Shown: positions 1-8,254 of the stretch, piece after piece | Layout of the letters: each line of letters opens with the position of its first letter | Position numbering within the stretch: the first letter of the stretch is position 1 | Program-made: the position numbers and the translations under genes | Origin: Paraphysomonas bandaiensis | Lineage: Eukaryota > Protista > Chrysophyceae | Length of the DNA: 8,254 nucleotides | Reading direction: 5' to 3' | Assembly: GCA_965644295.1 (NCBI GenBank) | Contig: CBFFRP010000554.1 | Location: forward strand, 1 to 8,254 | Notes under the pieces: generated by a model | Told to the model about the DNA's origin: nothing | The model's database searches: none | Seen by the model: only the letters and a program-made list of their open reading frames with translations

Positions 1-5
1 GACTG

Positions 6-107
6 CTGTTGGACACATCACCATGTCCATGTACCTGTATACCTGTACTGTTGGACACATCACCATGTCCATGTACCTGTATACCGGTACTGTTGGACAC
101 ATCACCA
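6..107. repeat. 42-bp tandem repeat (minisatellite), ~2.4 copies
   Basis: Unit CTGTTGGACACATCACCATGTCCATGTACCTGTATACCTGTA starts at 6 and 48, with a partial third copy at 90-107. Copies 1 and 2 differ at one position (T44 vs G86). Confidence 0.95.
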
Positions 108-625
108 GCTCTCTCTCTCTGTCCAACACACTCATAACACCACTGCAGTGTCATACACACACACAGTACACTCTACCTCCTCCTAGAAAACCCCCGGACA
201 AACTATCGCCTCTCCCTTACTGGGCGTACTGGTCCACCCACCATTCCTCCTTCCTTCCACAAACTCAATTCCTTCCATCTTATGATGTGTTTTGCTCCAA
301 CGATCACTTCTTCCTGGACACCAAATACCCGGTGGAGTTGGAACTACACGCGCTACTCGAGAGAATTCCTGACCTTGTCATCATGCGTCTCCAAAATGTG
401 TTGCAATGTCATTCCAAGGGAATGCAAGGAGTCCACCGTGCCAGGTCCATCAACCATCCCTCCCACGCCCTTCAGGGGAAGGAATTCTCCTCCGATAACA
501 GCGGTGACGGACCCAGCAAATCGGACCTAGGTGCACTCAGGACCCTAATTCAGAATGCTGAGCCCCCTCCAAAACCAATGGAGACCCATCCCAAAGGGAG
601 ACCCCCAGATCAAAAGCGCCGGTGA
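23..625 (+). CDS. Hypothetical ORF. The 5' part is minisatellite/low-complexity; the 3' part (~170-625) may be a retroelement or gene C-terminal remnant
   Basis: 200-aa ORF whose ATG lies inside the 42-bp repeat and is followed by CT/CA-rich sequence. The remainder is complex, Pro-rich sequence with RKPPD and RPPD motifs. No diagnostic domain recognised. Confidence 0.2.
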   Translation: MSMYLYTCTVGHITMSMYLYTGTVGHITSSLSLSNTLITPLQCHTHTQYTLPPPRKPPDKLSPLPYWAYWSTHHSSFLPQTQFLPSYDVFCSNDHFFLDTKYPVELELHALLERIPDLVIMRLQNVLQCHSKGMQGVHRARSINHPSHALQGKEFSSDNSGDGPSKSDLGALRTLIQNAEPPPKPMETHPKGRPPDQKRR

Positions 626-1320
626 GTCCACGGACACACGATAAAGGCGAATTTCATATCACACAAAAAGAACGGAAGTGGTTGCACCTTGGTGCTTGCG
701 GCGACGCACAAGCAGCTTTCGTAGCGTTAAATAGTAGGATAAAAGAGTTTGTATTGATTAGTTACGGGTAGTGGTCTAACTAGTATGACTAGCATTCTTC
801 TAGCCACTAATTGATGCAAGGTCTCAACGCCTATTGCTAAATAATCAGACATTCACTAGTATCTGTTAGGCCCTGATGACATCCTTGCCTATCCAAAGTG
901 CGTGGGGCTTGATGCCCCGTGAAAATGAAGGAAGCTGTGGAACTACATCGGACTTGCTCACAAGAAACTACCCAACTCTGATTAGAATGCAAAGATAAAA
1001 TGTAATGTGTTGCATATACACAGTATATCTGCATTCAGTCATCAGTGATGGCTAGAGTATGCTCCCATCATGTTTGAGTGAAAATTTTTATTGCTGACTA
1101 GGCAAAACACTTCTAGTCAACCTGGAGTCAACTTAGTCATCGTTAACTGAAAATACGAAATACTAAATGACTAAGTTCTTCAACCACTTTACTTTTTACG
1201 CCAATTTTGGTGTGACTACTATGCGCTTAATTTTGATTTATATTATTTATAAATATGCCCTATTTTAGCATACTCACCTCGTCTAGTGTAAATTATATGA
1301 TTATACCCAATAATAAAGTG

Positions 1321-2877
1321 CTAAGTGGAGGGTGTATGATCTGAACTACTAAAAGCCTTGACTGCACTGATAAGGTCAGAAATGATGTTGTCAATCCGGG
1401 CCTTCAGTTGCACTATATTAATATCATCAGTCGCAGATACACGTATATGTCCCTCAGGGAGTACTGCTATGACCTCCGGGGGAATTTCTACATCTGCCTT
1501 TGATACTACATCTAGCCATGGCCTCCGCGGAAATCTTTCTCTAAGAGAGCGTCTGATATTCAACTGTGCCTGAAGAGAGCTTTTATCCCCAGCTGATTCG
1601 GTAGGATCCATGACAAATATAACAGCAGTAGGGAGATGCTACATTTGTAATACATACATTAGATGTCAACCAATACTAACCAAAATATCAAAAAATGTAC
1701 TGCTCTATTCCTTCAGAATCCTGAAGTAGCATACATGGCACAAAAATATTCTTCAACAAGCATATCCATTCACCACTCTTACCGCCAGTGACGCATAGGT
1801 CAGTCTCTCCATCTCGTTTCTGCTAAATTCCTCCCTATCCAGCAAACCAGGGGTGTCTACTACTTGAACTTTCCGCCCCCCTTCTCTGCCCCCCATATGC
1901 CCCACAGTAAGTCCCCGGGTTGTGAAGGGATAGTTCGCGACAACTGGGACACCCGTCGAGATTCGACGGACCAGTGACGATTTACCCACATTGGGCGCCC
2001 CCAAAAGTACTACGGTTGGTATTGTTAAATCCAGCACCGGTACGCGGCGTAAATCCTTCTGGAGCTCTAAGAGCTCCTCTATGCACCGACTACATTCCGG
2101 ATCCGATGAGGATGTACCGGTAGAACTAGCAGCTGGTGCAGACACACCGTACAACCTCCCCAGAGCGGTTCGAGCCTCTTGCAACGTTGCCTACAGTACA
2201 GTACACGTCAACATGTACAGTGCACGTTTATGTCACAATTTCCGATATACCTCAGAGCTGTGTGTATTTTTAGCTAGCTTCGCTAGAGCAGCATAGTCCT
2301 TACCAAGCAGTGACGTACGCGCTCTCAGAGCCTTTATATCATCTAGAATTTCCTGTGTGCAACGCAGCATTAAAATTCCGTAAAAATACACTATCTGTGA
2401 TACCTTCAAGGTTCTACTCCCTCTTTTTACTCTAGACGCTATCGTTAACTCAGCCACGGCTGCCTTCATTACAGATCAAGTACAATATTAAACAATGCAC
2501 TCTTCAACCTCAAAAGGATGCAGATTGGCGAAACACTTCTTGTACGACTTCAATATATGGGTGAGGGGGGCAGTGAGCCCAACGGTCAGCTGATCGATAG
2601 AATGGACTGACAACTTTCTGTTTCGCATACTCAGATTGCGTATTTTTAAATCTGGGCGCACAGTATACATAGCCTTCAGACCGCGTTTGAAGTGCAGTGA
2701 AGGAGAGAGAATGTCAGGCAGATCTCTTCGGAAGGTTGCTCCCATCTCAGTGACGCTACTCTCAGATCTCTTCTGAGCGATGCTCGTATCTGTGGCGGTC
2801 ACGAGGCTCCTCATGCGGCCTGTGCGACAGAAACTGAACGACTGAATTAAGCCAACTCTCCAACCAGAGGGCCTCAT
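1321..2877 (-). CDS. NOG1-like (OBG-HflX superfamily) GTPase, short organellar type resembling plant PDE318-like proteins. Five exons: 2877-2509, 2463-2404, 2352-2251, 2190-1783, 1638-1321 (1257 nt, 418 aa)
   Basis: G1 GAPNVGKS (2001-1978), G2 NYPFTT, G3 DTPG (1857-1846, followed by LLDR..RNEMERLT), G4 SKAD (1503-1492), G5-like VSAT. Splicing four GT-AG introns restores family motifs across junctions: LHPFE|AAVAELTI and YASLA|HLPTAVIFVMDPT. It lacks the long C-terminal extension of nucleolar Nog1/GTPBP4 and has an Arg/Ser-rich, acid-free N-terminus. Confidence 0.92.
1639..1782 (-). other. Intron 4 of the NOG1-like gene (144 nt, phase 0)
   Basis: GCG|GTAAGA...AATGTAG|CAT. Removal restores the LAHLPTAVIFV motif typical of NOG1 G-domains. 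Confidence 0.9.
2191..2250 (-). other. Intron 3 of the NOG1-like gene (60 nt, phase 0)
   Basis: GAG|GTATAT...TTGAC...CTGTAG|GCA. Contains an in-frame TGA. Confidence 0.85.
2353..2403 (-). other. Intron 2 of the NOG1-like gene (51 nt, phase 0, in-frame and stop-free)
   Basis: AAG|GTATCA...CACACAG|GAA. AT-rich; removal gives RTLK|EILDDIKALR, a continuous amphipathic-looking segment. Confidence 0.72.
2464..2508 (-). other. Intron 1 of the NOG1-like gene (45 nt, phase 0)
   Basis: GAG|GTTGAA...AATGAAG|GCA. Contains in-frame stops; removal joins LHPFE to AAVAELTI. Confidence 0.85.
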
Positions 2878-3414
2878 AAGGGAGATTCACTTCAGTGACT
2901 AGTAAACTAAAGTAAAGGCATCTGCCTCACTCCACCCCTCATATATATGCGTCTATAGGCATCTGTGGACGTGTGTGTGTAGAGTTTGAGACGTCTAGAC
3001 GTCATATAGACACATATGTACACGACCACCCTGGTATACGCAAAATACGCTCAGCTGTACTTATATATACACCTAGAATACGCATCTCATACCACACCAC
3101 ACCACACCATACCATACCATACCATGCGTATCGGCAGTCAGCATCTTATTTTTCGGAAATAAATTGAGGCAAAATTCTTCTATATTACTGAAGTACAACT
3201 ACGTCTAGAATACATATAATTGTTGTCTCAATATTTGAGGCATCTTTGAACAAAAATATACGAAGGCATGCCACACCATACCACACCTCTGAGCACTGCT
3301 GTAGGAAAGAATAACATACATACACACTGAGAACACCCGACCACACCGAACACATCTATACATGAGACTCTATGTGGAGTAGTCGTTAAAGGCACTGGAA
3401 CTGATACTGTTGAC
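2878..3414. promoter_or_regulatory. Divergent (head-to-head) intergenic region, likely shared promoter/5' UTRs
   Basis: About 540 bp between the minus-strand ATG at 2877 and the plus-strand ORF start at 3415. Contains TA-rich tracts (2941-2948, 3062-3069). The call is positional inference only. Confidence 0.5.
3091..3125. repeat. Pentanucleotide microsatellite (ACCAC)3(ACCAT)4
   Basis: Seven ACCAY units; a shorter related tract CCACACCATACCACACC occurs at 3271-3287. Confidence 0.9.
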
Positions 3415-4855
3415 ATGATACGGATCCCTTCCGATCAGTTCAGAGCATCGGCTCCTCTGCTGATGTTTGCTTGTAGTGTGGCGCTGTTGTCTGCTCGAGT
3501 GAGACGACTGCTGCATCATATGGTCGCCAGGACACGACCGCTAACTACTGATATATCTGTAGACAGCTCCACTGGATGCATTGTAACGGCCAGAGACGTG
3601 TCGAGAGGGGTCAGATGGGAGTCCATCAGAAGCGAACAGAGAGATCAGTCCACTTCATGTGAGCTGAGTTTCATCAGTCGACTTGATGCCCCTGTGCGAG
3701 TGTGTCTCATAGACACAGATGGGAGACTCAAGCAGCTGGCTGTTATGACTGCTTCAGATGCTGCGGTGTTGGAGTGCACACAGACGTACTTCTCCTATGC
3801 ATGTATCAGAGCCGTGTGTGCGTTGCCTCCCACTCTAGAGGGGGTCTCACCTCATGTACGTGTGTGCTCTTTCTGGATTTGTTCGTTTGATTGTTTTTCA
3901 GAACATTGTCTGTTTGTATACTCCTCTCGGGGGAGGCCTGCGACACGCCATCACACTGACCAACTGTCCTCTAGATTCCGATCCTGTCGTTTCGGTATCC
4001 TTTACTCCTGTCGCGACTTCTGTGGTTGAGTGCTCTGATTCACATGGCTCCGACTCCTCTGCTGTGCAAGTCGTCTCAGAGTGGGAGCGGGAAGAACAGG
4101 AATGCACTGAGGTGTGCGGATTCAGGGTGTATTACCGTCCTTCAACCCAGATGCGCACAATGACAGCCGTCGGAAAGAGTCTACAACAGGTGCCCAATGT
4201 ATATCACTGCGCTAACCAATCACTTATGTATCATAATACACAGGCAACAAATGTGCTTCCCACATCTATATTAGTTGCGCTAAGGAATAACCTGGTAGTG
4301 CGTGTGGATGGCGACCCTCATCCAGGTTATTTAGTGTCAGGAAACTTCTTTCTGAACCCACTCCATCTGTTGCATGGCCACTCTTGTGTGACTGTGGATG
4401 TGCATGGGACGGGAGGCCTTTCCATTCTGGTTGTGCTAATGATGATGTACTTAGATATCTACCATAAGGGTAACGAAGGGGTAACCCCTTGGTGGGAACT
4501 CCTGGCGGCATGTGGAGAGGAGAGGGAGTCAGATGATGCTGTTGAGAAAGCCGCAAAGATATGCGTCATGTGCCTCGAGGGTGGAGGTGATCCGACGATA
4601 CGAAGCACTGTCTCGCGTGTGTTGGATTGTGGAGTTAGTGTATCCACAGCACTGTCCTCACAGAGACTGGGAAAAGAATGTCCAGCTGACAAAAGTAGTG
4701 GAATGGAAAAAGTCACGACAAATTGTGAAACGAAACCGTGTCCCAATTCACCGAACAGATCAACCGAATCTGTCACCGTCCAAACGCCGAAGCCGTCATC
4801 GCTATTGGACCATGTATTGTGGGCTGTTGTGTACACGTGTAGTGACTCGAGATAA
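3415..4855 (+). CDS. Uncharacterised protein, predicted exons 3415-3855, 3902-4189, 4244-4855 (~446 aa). Putative VHL-beta-like domain plus degenerate zincin-like region; 5' end uncertain
   Basis: ORFs 3415..4029 and 3854..4855 join in frame by removing a 46-nt intron, 3856-3901 (CAT|GTACGT...TGTTTTTCAG|AAC). A second 54-nt in-frame intron is likely at 4190-4243 (CAG|GTGCCC...GCTAAC...ACACAG|GCA). Intron-like signals at 3461-3476 and 3499-3562 make the N-terminus ambiguous. Domain calls are by-eye similarity. Confidence 0.72.
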
Positions 4856-4985
4856 CGTATGAATTCCCTGTTATTTATGTTGAGTTTTGCTTATTTGTAC
4901 GCAATTCGAAGCTGTATTATAAGTTTTTGTTGGATTATGACCGTAACTTGAGTAAAGCACTTATGTAATACTGTATTGGATTGCA

Positions 4986-4999
4986 GGTTAGGGTTAGGG
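4986..4999 (+). repeat. Short internal telomeric tract GG(TTAGGG)2
   Basis: GGTTAGGGTTAGGG in the same orientation as the terminal array, 465 bp proximal to it. Confidence 0.92.
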
Positions 5000-5190
5000 C
5001 ATCATATAGATAGGGGTATATCTCGTACCTGCATTCACCGTTGAATTATACAATAGTTGAATCGTGGATAGATATACATCCCAGTCGGAGTGCTTGCACA
5101 TTCACATAGTGATGCAACTGATCCTTCAACGTAGCATTCATATTCTCTACCAGTCCATTAGACCTCGGGTTCTGGAGAGTTGTATGTATT
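5000..5190 (-). mobile_element. Degenerate LTR-retrotransposon (Ty3/Gypsy-type) integrase core fragment, frameshifted and truncated
   Basis: The minus strand reads IHTTLQNPRSNGLVENMNATLKDQLHHYVNV (5189-5097), then one extra base near 5096, then KHSDWDVYLSTIQLLYNSTVNAGTRYTPIYMM (5095-5000). This matches the Gypsy integrase consensus TTxYHPQxNGxVERxNxTLKxxL...xxDWDxxLxxxxxAYNSxxxxSTGxTPFxLxFG. The catalytic Glu of DD35E corresponds to GLVE (codon 5147-5145). Confidence 0.88.
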
Positions 5191-5464
5191 GAACTACAAC
5201 CAACTCCTATGTGCGTACTTGAAGTTTGGTAAAGCCAATCGCTAGTAGTTATCCTGTATTCTATGTAGCAATGAAATACAGAATATACATGACTACAGTA
5301 TAGGAGTAGCTATTACAAGTATACAAAGAAACTGAAAATATAGCAGCTGTTAAAGATACGATTTGTAAAACAGAATGTTAATGTTGGTGAATGACGTGGT
5401 TCCTAACTCACAATGCTACAACATAATAAATTTACTATATCTCCTATAATATCAATCAGTTCGA

Positions 5465-8224
5465 TTAGGGTTAGGGTTAGGGTTAGGGTTAGGGTTAGGG
5501 TTAGGGTTAGGGTTAGGGTTAGGGTTAGGGTTAGGGTTAGGGTTAGGGTTAGGGTTAGGGTTAGGGTTAGGGTTAGGGTTAGGGTTAGGGTTAGGGTTAG
5601 GGTTAGGGTTAGGGTTAGGGTTAGGGTTAGGGTTAGGGTTAGGGTTAGGGTTAGGGTTAGGGTTAGGGTTAGGGTTAGGGTTAGGGTTAGGGTTAGGGTT
5701 AGGGTTAGGGTTAGGGTTAGGGTTAGGGTTAGGGTTAGGGTTAGGGTTAGGGTTAGGGTTAGGGTTAGGGTTAGGGTTAGGGTTAGGGTTAGGGTTAGGG
5801 TTAGGGTTAGGGTTAGGGTTAGGGTTAGGGTTAGGGTTAGGGTTAGGGTTAGGGTTAGGGTTAGGGTTAGGGTTAGGGTTAGGGTTAGGGTTAGGGTTAG
5901 GGTTAGGGTTAGGGTTAGGGTTAGGGTTAGGGTTAGGGTTAGGGTTAGGGTTAGGGTTAGGGTTAGGGTTAGGGTTAGGGTTAGGGTTAGGGTTAGGGTT
6001 AGGGTTAGGGTTAGGGTTAGGGTTAGGGTTAGGGTTAGGGTTAGGGTTAGGGTTAGGGTTAGGGTTAGGGTTAGGGTTAGGGTTAGGGTTAGGGTTAGGG
6101 TTAGGGTTAGGGTTAGGGTTAGGGTTAGGGTTAGGGTTAGGGTTAGGGTTAGGGTTAGGGTTAGGGTTAGGGTTAGGGTTAGGGTTAGGGTTAGGGTTAG
6201 GGTTAGGGTTAGGGTTAGGGTTAGGGTTAGGGTTAGGGTTAGGGTTAGGGTTAGGGTTAGGGTTAGGGTTAGGGTTAGGGTTAGGGTTAGGGTTAGGGTT
6301 AGGGTTAGGGTTAGGGTTAGGGTTAGGGTTAGGGTTAGGGTTAGGGTTAGGGTTAGGGTTAGGGTTAGGGTTAGGGTTAGGGTTAGGGTTAGGGTTAGGG
6401 TTAGGGTTAGGGTTAGGGTTAGGGTTAGGGTTAGGGTTAGGGTTAGGGTTAGGGTTAGGGTTAGGGTTAGGGTTAGGGTTAGGGTTAGGGTTAGGGTTAG
6501 GGTTAGGGTTAGGGTTAGGGTTAGGGTTAGGGTTAGGGTTAGGGTTAGGGTTAGGGTTAGGGTTAGGGTTAGGGTTAGGGTTAGGGTTAGGGTTAGGGTT
6601 AGGGTTAGGGTTAGGGTTAGGGTTAGGGTTAGGGTTAGGGTTAGGGTTAGGGTTAGGGTTAGGGTTAGGGTTAGGGTTAGGGTTAGGGTTAGGGTTAGGG
6701 TTAGGGTTAGGGTTAGGGTTAGGGTTAGGGTTAGGGTTAGGGTTAGGGTTAGGGTTAGGGTTAGGGTTAGGGTTAGGGTTAGGGTTAGGGTTAGGGTTAG
6801 GGTTAGGGTTAGGGTTAGGGTTAGGGTTAGGGTTAGGGTTAGGGTTAGGGTTAGGGTTAGGGTTAGGGTTAGGGTTAGGGTTAGGGTTAGGGTTAGGGTT
6901 AGGGTTAGGGTTAGGGTTAGGGTTAGGGTTAGGGTTAGGGTTAGGGTTAGGGTTAGGGTTAGGGTTAGGGTTAGGGTTAGGGTTAGGGTTAGGGTTAGGG
7001 TTAGGGTTAGGGTTAGGGTTAGGGTTAGGGTTAGGGTTAGGGTTAGGGTTAGGGTTAGGGTTAGGGTTAGGGTTAGGGTTAGGGTTAGGGTTAGGGTTAG
7101 GGTTAGGGTTAGGGTTAGGGTTAGGGTTAGGGTTAGGGTTAGGGTTAGGGTTAGGGTTAGGGTTAGGGTTAGGGTTAGGGTTAGGGTTAGGGTTAGGGTT
7201 AGGGTTAGGGTTAGGGTTAGGGTTAGGGTTAGGGTTAGGGTTAGGGTTAGGGTTAGGGTTAGGGTTAGGGTTAGGGTTAGGGTTAGGGTTAGGGTTAGGG
7301 TTAGGGTTAGGGTTAGGGTTAGGGTTAGGGTTAGGGTTAGGGTTAGGGTTAGGGTTAGGGTTAGGGTTAGGGTTAGGGTTAGGGTTAGGGTTAGGGTTAG
7401 GGTTAGGGTTAGGGTTAGGGTTAGGGTTAGGGTTAGGGTTAGGGTTAGGGTTAGGGTTAGGGTTAGGGTTAGGGTTAGGGTTAGGGTTAGGGTTAGGGTT
7501 AGGGTTAGGGTTAGGGTTAGGGTTAGGGTTAGGGTTAGGGTTAGGGTTAGGGTTAGGGTTAGGGTTAGGGTTAGGGTTAGGGTTAGGGTTAGGGTTAGGG
7601 TTAGGGTTAGGGTTAGGGTTAGGGTTAGGGTTAGGGTTAGGGTTAGGGTTAGGGTTAGGGTTAGGGTTAGGGTTAGGGTTAGGGTTAGGGTTAGGGTTAG
7701 GGTTAGGGTTAGGGTTAGGGTTAGGGTTAGGGTTAGGGTTAGGGTTAGGGTTAGGGTTAGGGTTAGGGTTAGGGTTAGGGTTAGGGTTAGGGTTAGGGTT
7801 AGGGTTAGGGTTAGGGTTAGGGTTAGGGTTAGGGTTAGGGTTAGGGTTAGGGTTAGGGTTAGGGTTAGGGTTAGGGTTAGGGTTAGGGTTAGGGTTAGGG
7901 TTAGGGTTAGGGTTAGGGTTAGGGTTAGGGTTAGGGTTAGGGTTAGGGTTAGGGTTAGGGTTAGGGTTAGGGTTAGGGTTAGGGTTAGGGTTAGGGTTAG
8001 GGTTAGGGTTAGGGTTAGGGTTAGGGTTAGGGTTAGGGTTAGGGTTAGGGTTAGGGTTAGGGTTAGGGTTAGGGTTAGGGTTAGGGTTAGGGTTAGGGTT
8101 AGGGTTAGGGTTAGGGTTAGGGTTAGGGTTAGGGTTAGGGTTAGGGTTAGGGTTAGGGTTAGGGTTAGGGTTAGGGTTAGGGTTAGGGTTAGGGTTAGGG
8201 TTAGGGTTAGGGTTAGGGTTAGGG
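5465..8224 (+). repeat. Telomere, (TTAGGG)460
   Basis: 2760 bp of uninterrupted TTAGGG, with the G-rich strand running 5'->3' toward the end of the window, which is the polarity of a true chromosome end. Confidence 0.99.
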
Positions 8225-8254
8225 TAAAATTAAAATTAAAATATGCTCTATAAT
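8225..8254 (+). other. Terminal TTAAAA-type tail, probably a long-read basecalling/assembly-end artefact
   Basis: TAAAA TTAAAA TTAAAA TATGCTCTATAAT keeps the 6-nt period with GGG replaced by AAA. TTAGGG-to-TTAAAA miscalling is a known nanopore error mode. Confidence 0.65.

Follow-up and report, generated by a model that had tools for sequence, protein, structure and literature searches.

Organisation of the chromosome end

The window analysed in this study is the entire contig C554 (8,254 bp; CBFFRP010000554.1) of the Paraphysomonas bandaiensis assembly, which comprises 62.6 Mb in 669 contigs. The subject of the analysis is the distal part of this contig, where a 465-bp non-telomeric block (5000-5464) separates a short, buried telomere tract (hereafter the stub) from a long terminal telomere array. 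Structure and junctions were read from the assembled contig sequence. The block proved to be a composite of two unrelated transposon pieces, namely a piece of an integrase gene in antisense and a piece of a Ty1/copia long terminal repeat (LTR) in sense, which meet at the junction 5184/5186. An earlier model-made description of this DNA (the sequence-only reading) had reported a gene stop at 4855, a stub at 4986-4999, a 465-bp block and an array from 5465, and all of these were seen at those places, the stop being the end of a 333-aa open reading frame (ORF). The features of the terminal region are as follows:

4986-4999, plus strand: buried telomere stub GG(TTAGGG)2, identified from the sequence and without a TTCGA leader
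5000-5184, minus strand: Gypsy-type integrase relic, identified by translations, tblastn and DNA matches
5186-5460, plus strand: Ty1/copia LTR, the first ~276 of 309 bp (LTR positions 1-276, 96-97% identity)
5461-5464, plus strand: TCGA (TTCGA together with T5460), a short form of a leader that matches neither the LTR nor the telomere repeat
5465-8225, plus strand: terminal array of TTAGGG x460.2 with 100% matches (Tandem Repeats Finder, composition)
8226-8254, plus strand: unpolished read end of 29 nt in TTAAAA units, miscalled TTAGGG

The integrase relic

The proximal part of the block had been read as the C-terminal half of an integrase core on the minus strand, and this assignment was borne out. 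The minus-strand frames of the relic read ...TTLQNPRSNGLVENMNATLKDQLHHYVNVQ in one frame and ...HSDWDVYLSTIQLLYNSTVNAGTRYTPIYMM in another, and together they cover the last part of the catalytic core, including the E of D,D35E within GLVEN, and the next ~50 aa. A tblastn search with the 720-aa ORF of its best relative (locus L022) returned 29/30 and 28/32 identities at a joint E of 2e-26, with a frameshift near 5094/5095. Across residues 501-561 of this ORF, 57 of 62 residues are identical (92% at the protein level), thereby answering the case of a missing integrase match in 5000-5190, which the sequence-only reading had named as speaking against itself. The DNA identity of the relic to eight other loci ranges from 70 to 86%, and the protein identity of 92% is far above the DNA identity of 82%, indicating that the relic derives from a sister lineage that was under selection until then and that it has undergone little decay since. 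The Pfam profile rve_3 gave 17.8 bits (E 0.0028) on the relic alone, under the cut-off of 26.5. The L022 ORF scored 48.6 bits (E 1e-12) with rve and also matched Integrase_H2C2 and SH3_Tf2-1, and in the relatives at L022, L023 and L026 these two domains scored 37-40 bits and 25-28 bits, respectively, the latter slightly below the cut-off of 30. Neither the Integrase_H2C2 nor the SH3-like domain is present in the window, where the fragment is cut on both sides, and what survives is therefore the relic of one of these genes rather than a working member. The label Gypsy-type is based on the integrase domain, the relatives' loci reaching 330 aa upstream of the integrase.

At one edge the relic breaks off at ...YTPIYMM, and at the other it is interrupted by the copia LTR. 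The first of these edges had been described as a point where similarity stops just before an expected (F/Y)G(R), and the relatives do continue with FGREAS exactly there: seven of them read on as ...YMM-FGREAS at the position where the window switches to CCCTAA. The possibility that CCCTAA (CCCTAACCCTAACC) natively follows ...YMM in the element was excluded, as these seven relatives run through as integrase.

Additionally, a SET domain (Pfam, 35-39 bits, cut-off 22.4) was observed in the family of the relic, ~230 aa upstream of the zinc-binding domain of the integrase. It lies in the same open frame as the integrase in three diverged copies (L022:1024-3183, minus strand; L023:2-1663, plus strand; L026:994-3174, minus strand), and the Atlas clusters nearest to this SET-bearing family are plain integrases without SET. 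Judging by the predicted domains, the presence of a histone-methyltransferase-like domain within a retrotransposon pol would be unusual.

The truncated copia LTR

The distal part of the block, which had previously been treated as anonymous sequence, was identified as 275 bp of a copia LTR. At least 40 scored copies, out of at least 288 candidate copies genome-wide, match this piece at 96-97% identity, and LTR pairs are spaced 4872 bp. The locus L031:1281-6461 holds an intact Ty1/copia element of 5.15 kb, whose 309-bp LTRs are 100% identical and whose single ORF of 1505 aa encodes Retrotran_gag_2, zf-CCHC, gag_pre-integrs and SH3_retrovirus domains, followed by RVT_2. The LTR in the window begins at the exact LTR 5' terminus, as do the 5' and 3' LTRs of intact copies, and the position of the integrase junction at this terminus indicates ordinary nested integration in genomic DNA. 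At its distal side the piece ends 33 bp short of a complete LTR: the other copies all continue as CAATATTG..., whereas the window continues with TCGA and TTAGGG x460. The terminal G-strand array thus stands directly on an LTR that continues differently in other copies, as in chromosome healing by de novo telomere addition. A seeming LTR match at locus L009 that extends 7 nt further was attributed to chance.

The window copy carries 10 differences from the family majority, seven of which are private, and it is therefore an older copy. Separately, 23 LTR copies compared among themselves showed a median identity of 100%, a pattern typical of a burst that is very recent or still under way.

The stub and the terminal array

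The stub stands in the context GCA-GG-(TTAGGG)2-CATCAT, with two in-register nt on its 5' flank, and the GG at 4986-4987 may be chromosomal and in register with the repeat by these 2 nt. A simple count over both strands predicts ~0.5 occurrences of a 14-mer in the 62.6-Mb assembly and ~4e-6 occurrences no more than 500 bp from a chosen point, and the position of the stub beside a telomere is therefore not due to chance. In-register microhomology is the rule at chromosome healing and at telomere-repeat insertion at breaks (PMC2246262). The action of telomerase at ~4985 is supported by the orientation of the stub and by its 2-nt in-register flank, both of which are as expected at a break. Among the loci examined, 17 tract starts without a leader were found, and the independent ones lie mostly on G-ending flanks, like that at 4986. 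At the outer junction of the stub (4999/5000) the window reads GGG/CATCAT versus CCAAA/CATCAT in the relatives, and no microhomology was found at this junction when judged against the relatives' sequence.

The units of TTAAAA beyond the array correspond to a documented nanopore miscall of TTAGGG (PMC9414165), and other contigs of the assembly (the ends of L069 and L074) carry nanopore adapter remnants (GCAATACGTAACTGAACGAAGT) after the telomere. These two observations indicate that the array is terminal, that the arrays on those other contigs are likewise genuine molecule ends and that the assembly is nanopore-based. The earlier view of the array as the chromosome terminus thus holds, with the correction that 29 nt of miscall-like units come after it.

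The leader at new telomere tracts

The tetranucleotide between the LTR and the array is part of a pattern that recurs throughout the genome. A search of the genome with the 17-letter pattern TTCGA+(TTAGGG)2 identified 71 sites, while the reversed control identified none, and the contexts of 30 of the 71 tracts (L048-L077) were examined. The flanks upstream of the leader are unrelated among sites. The leader itself is constant beside the repeats and variably shortened at its far side, with 5, 7, 8, 9, 10, 11 or at least 12 nt of CAAACTATTCGA, and the window, with 5 nt, belongs to the shortest class. This graded length fits a DNA end that pairs at varied points of an RNA and is then extended into the template, and it does not fit a fixed inserted element. 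The pattern fits a leader that telomerase would generate by copying its RNA beside the template; at mouse TERC-ITS loci (ITS, interstitial telomeric sequence), the repeats are likewise preceded by a few bases derived from the RNA next to the template (PMC2246262).

Many of the TTCGA-led tracts lie inside large contigs and consist of exactly two repeats, mostly running on as TT or TTA, which results in a near-fixed insert of 25-28 nt, (C)AAACTATTCGA(TTAGGG)2TT(A), between unrelated flanks. These 25-28-nt inserts look like the product of a single template-copying round at a break that was then rejoined. At locus L059 (C132:50529), an internal leader and two-repeat tract lies ~200 bp from the 5' start of an LTR of the same copia family. 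Furthermore, at no fewer than three places (L051, L057 and L077; minus strand) the leader and (TTAGGG)4 are followed by one repeated element, which begins TACGCTGTCCCCCGATCGCTCC and is unrelated to the Gypsy-type family. The Gypsy family was considered as a candidate for the element that recurrently trails telomere tracts (TACGCTGTCC...) and was rejected on finding no DNA or protein similarity. No other telomere association of the Gypsy-type family was seen in the loci examined. Layered ends of the same kind as that in the window occur in this genome at L069, L064, L075 and L074.

History of the chromosome end

The overall explanation that we favour, with a probability of roughly 0.6, is that of a layered, twice-capped chromosome end. 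Three of its elements are seen directly, namely the nested junction between the two transposons, the mid-gene cut of the integrase at the stub and the mid-LTR cut at the leader and telomere. The sequence of events begins with the normal integration of a copia element into the integrase gene of an older Gypsy-type element, which left the junction at 5184/5186. A break at ~4985-4987 would then have exposed a 3' end terminating in GG, to which telomerase may have added two repeats directly, and this short end would have been joined at 4999/5000, without microhomology, to transposon-nest DNA that was broken in the middle of the integrase gene. The end joining of real DNA ends would be the likeliest route for this third step. 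Finally, a break in the LTR at 5460 appears to have been healed by telomerase, which would have copied TCGA and then built the 2.8-kb array. A number of observations weigh against this explanation or limit it. The data do not fix the order of the three steps that follow the nested integration, and the contig measures only 8.3 kb and begins in a high-copy repeat. Furthermore, the stub ends in GGG/C, while most short tracts in the genome continue as TT or TTA, and the proposed origin of the leader rests on the pattern of sites.

The transposon nest could have arrived at this position in two ways. The sequence-only reading had proposed a form of the first, in which the chromosome ended near 4999, its telomere shrank to two repeats, and the end then gained foreign DNA, rebroke and was recapped. 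The foreign DNA would have been gained either through a copying process (break-induced replication or template switching) or because a broken fragment was fused to the end. We regard this as a serious possibility that falls somewhat short of even odds. The stub is oriented as a centromere-side end would be, and layered ends are seen at L069, L064 and L075. Conversely, no donor for the block was found in the 62.6-Mb assembly when the whole block and the integrase part were searched separately; the best integrase DNA match reaches 82-86% and the integrase/LTR junction is present at no other locus. The search for a donor and for other ends carrying the block, which had been suggested earlier, thus recovered relatives and LTR copies and did not recover a donor. 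The absence of a donor from the assembly also weakens the earlier proposal of break-induced replication from another end. The lack of microhomology at 4999/5000 relative to the relatives' sequence likewise counts against capture, and the seven private LTR changes make a recent copy from a surviving donor unlikely. The second way is a version of the favoured explanation in which the nest was always distal to the last gene, a deletion from ~4985 to the middle of the integrase was sealed with a two-repeat filler, and a terminal break in the LTR was healed as a distinct event. This version, which we consider close to an even proposition, accounts for the missing donor, and the process is documented in mammals (PMC2246262). 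Additionally, the dozens of internal tracts of two to three repeats between unrelated sequences suggest that telomerase-extended breaks are often rejoined. It is disfavoured by the lack of any trace of the remaining Gypsy element or its LTR left of 4985, by the need for two or three breaks close together and by the lack of an empty allele for comparison. The orientation of the stub slightly favours capture, whereas the missing donor favours the in-situ origin. What stands of the earlier proposal of capture and recapping is that the relic is cut mid-gene at a stub foreign to its intact relatives and that the distal array lies on a de novo healed break. A chromosome that once stably ended at 4999 does not follow from these data, as an in-situ deletion with a two-repeat telomerase filler fits equally.

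Explanations that depart further from the twice-capped end were also weighed. In an RNA-templated patch, the telomere 3' end would have primed reverse transcription of a Gypsy transcript, or retroelement cDNA would have been captured, as happens with telomere-attached retroelements. Read rightwards from the stub, the plus strand runs antisense to the integrase, as G-strand priming on a sense RNA would predict, yet there is a 50% chance of such a polarity in any case. The block crosses from Gypsy DNA into the start of the copia U3 and is therefore not retroelement cDNA, as this junction exists in genomic DNA and in neither element's RNA or cDNA. A read-through transcript of a nested locus would be required, and such a locus is absent from the assembly. 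We consider this patch highly improbable, and the cDNA-capture option of the sequence-only reading is likewise argued against by an integrase/LTR junction at the exact LTR terminus. A related proposal, in which a critically short telomere of this telomerase-positive protist could be extended by copying transposon transcripts or nest DNA as an emergency patch before recapping, appears very unlikely: synthesis primed by the telomere on a sense RNA would agree with the antisense orientation of the integrase piece, and no other observation calls for it. If true, it would make retroelement-rich DNA a regular back-up substrate and represent a step towards the retroelement telomeres of Drosophila. 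An artefact, whether from read chimerism in the nanopore data or from a mis-join of this small contig, might be suspected from the contig size of 8254 bp and from the unpolished end with its TTAAAA miscalls. It is nonetheless unlikely, as adapter is expected at chimeric joins and none was found at 4999/5000 or 5185/5186, though the assembly keeps adapters at contig ends. Moreover, the 14-nt telomere seed and the genome-typical TTCGA leader found at the two joins would not arise from an artefact, and the same architecture is present on other contigs.

Flanking genes and repeats

The remainder of the contig comprises a repetitive start followed by ~4 kb of DNA (860-4985) that was found to be single copy in a genome search, and the contig is therefore not a redundant haplotig; a second haplotype contig was not found in the assembly. 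The features listed for this part are as follows:

110-860: high-copy repeat at the contig start, 100% identical at many loci
3854-4855, plus strand: 333-aa ORF with its stop at 4855, the last single-copy ORF before the end and single copy in the genome
4874-4974, strand not assigned: dispersed repeat of ~95 nt, 77-87% identical to at least 12 other loci

The high-copy repeat is preceded by a 42-bp tandem repeat (2.4 copies, 6-107), and in some copies at other loci an additional ~570-990 bp interrupts the repeat at position 413. On its minus strand the single-copy part encodes a NOG1-family GTPase with MMR_HSR1 and NOG1 domains (Pfam). No Pfam family was found for the 333-aa ORF (3854-4855) and Rfam gave no match over 1-5464. 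The 130 bp after the gene stop had been described as unique sequence, which proved incorrect, since this interval holds the dispersed repeat at 4874-4974. This motif begins 19 nt past the ORF stop with a sharp 5' edge that is shared between copies (ATGTTGAGTTTTGC), and most copies contain a 7-bp hairpin, TTGCTTA/TAAGCAA; the fold of 4870-4985 is no better than that of shuffled sequences (z -1.2). The motif may represent a small mobile element or serve as a signal at 3' ends. The region 4840-4985 was also considered as a possible remainder, left of the stub, of the same Gypsy element, and this candidate was rejected, as the region has no similarity to Gypsy loci; its matches represent the separate ~95-nt motif.

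Comparison with known systems

If the twice-capped explanation is correct, this locus cleanly preserves the natural traces of telomerase having acted twice on broken DNA at a single end. The two rounds would have started differently, one directly on a G-ending break and the other through a leader copied beside the RNA template. Considered alongside the other layered ends, the locus suggests that chromosome ends of this protist often break and are recapped, whereby transposon nests are trimmed, and it contributes one more dated and well-delimited case to a genome-wide study of healing junctions. It also advises caution, as blocks described as captured retroelements may be DNA that was already present at the end.

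Retroelement capture or attachment at chromosome ends is known from Ty1 cDNA capture in yeast, from HeT-A/TART and from endonuclease-less Penelope-like elements. As in these telomere-attached retroelements, the window has retroelement sequence flanked by telomere repeats at the end of a chromosome; unlike them, the block contains a genomic nested-insertion junction and was made from neither element's RNA. With chromosome healing the locus shares G-strand repeats that lie directly on non-telomeric DNA, 2 in-register nt at the proximal junction and, at the distal one, a cut at an arbitrary position inside a transposon LTR. The locus differs from this model in showing two rounds 465 bp apart, of which the distal one carries the short non-telomeric leader TCGA.

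Short interstitial telomeric and TERC-ITS loci (Nergadze et al. 2007, PMC2246262; PMC8537989) share with the stub a perfect short tract, in-register 5' microhomology and unrelated 3' DNA, and the mouse TERC-ITS loci carry template-adjacent bases before the repeats, like the TTCGA/CTATTCGA leader described here. In contrast to TERC-ITS loci, the tract in the window lies 465 bp from a real telomere rather than deep in a chromosome, no fragment of the telomerase RNA 3' domain was seen here and there is no empty orthologous locus for comparison. The neotelomeres and telomere-spanning fusions that long reads have revealed in cancer genomes (PMC11293586) also combine buried repeats followed by other DNA with a new telomere at a break. 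They differ from the present case, as the window represents the germline or clonal state of a free-living protist and its buried tract measures 14 nt. The processes at this chromosome end are thus known ones, namely chromosome healing together with either telomere capture or an interstitial repair scar; this is a new example that involves no new mechanism.

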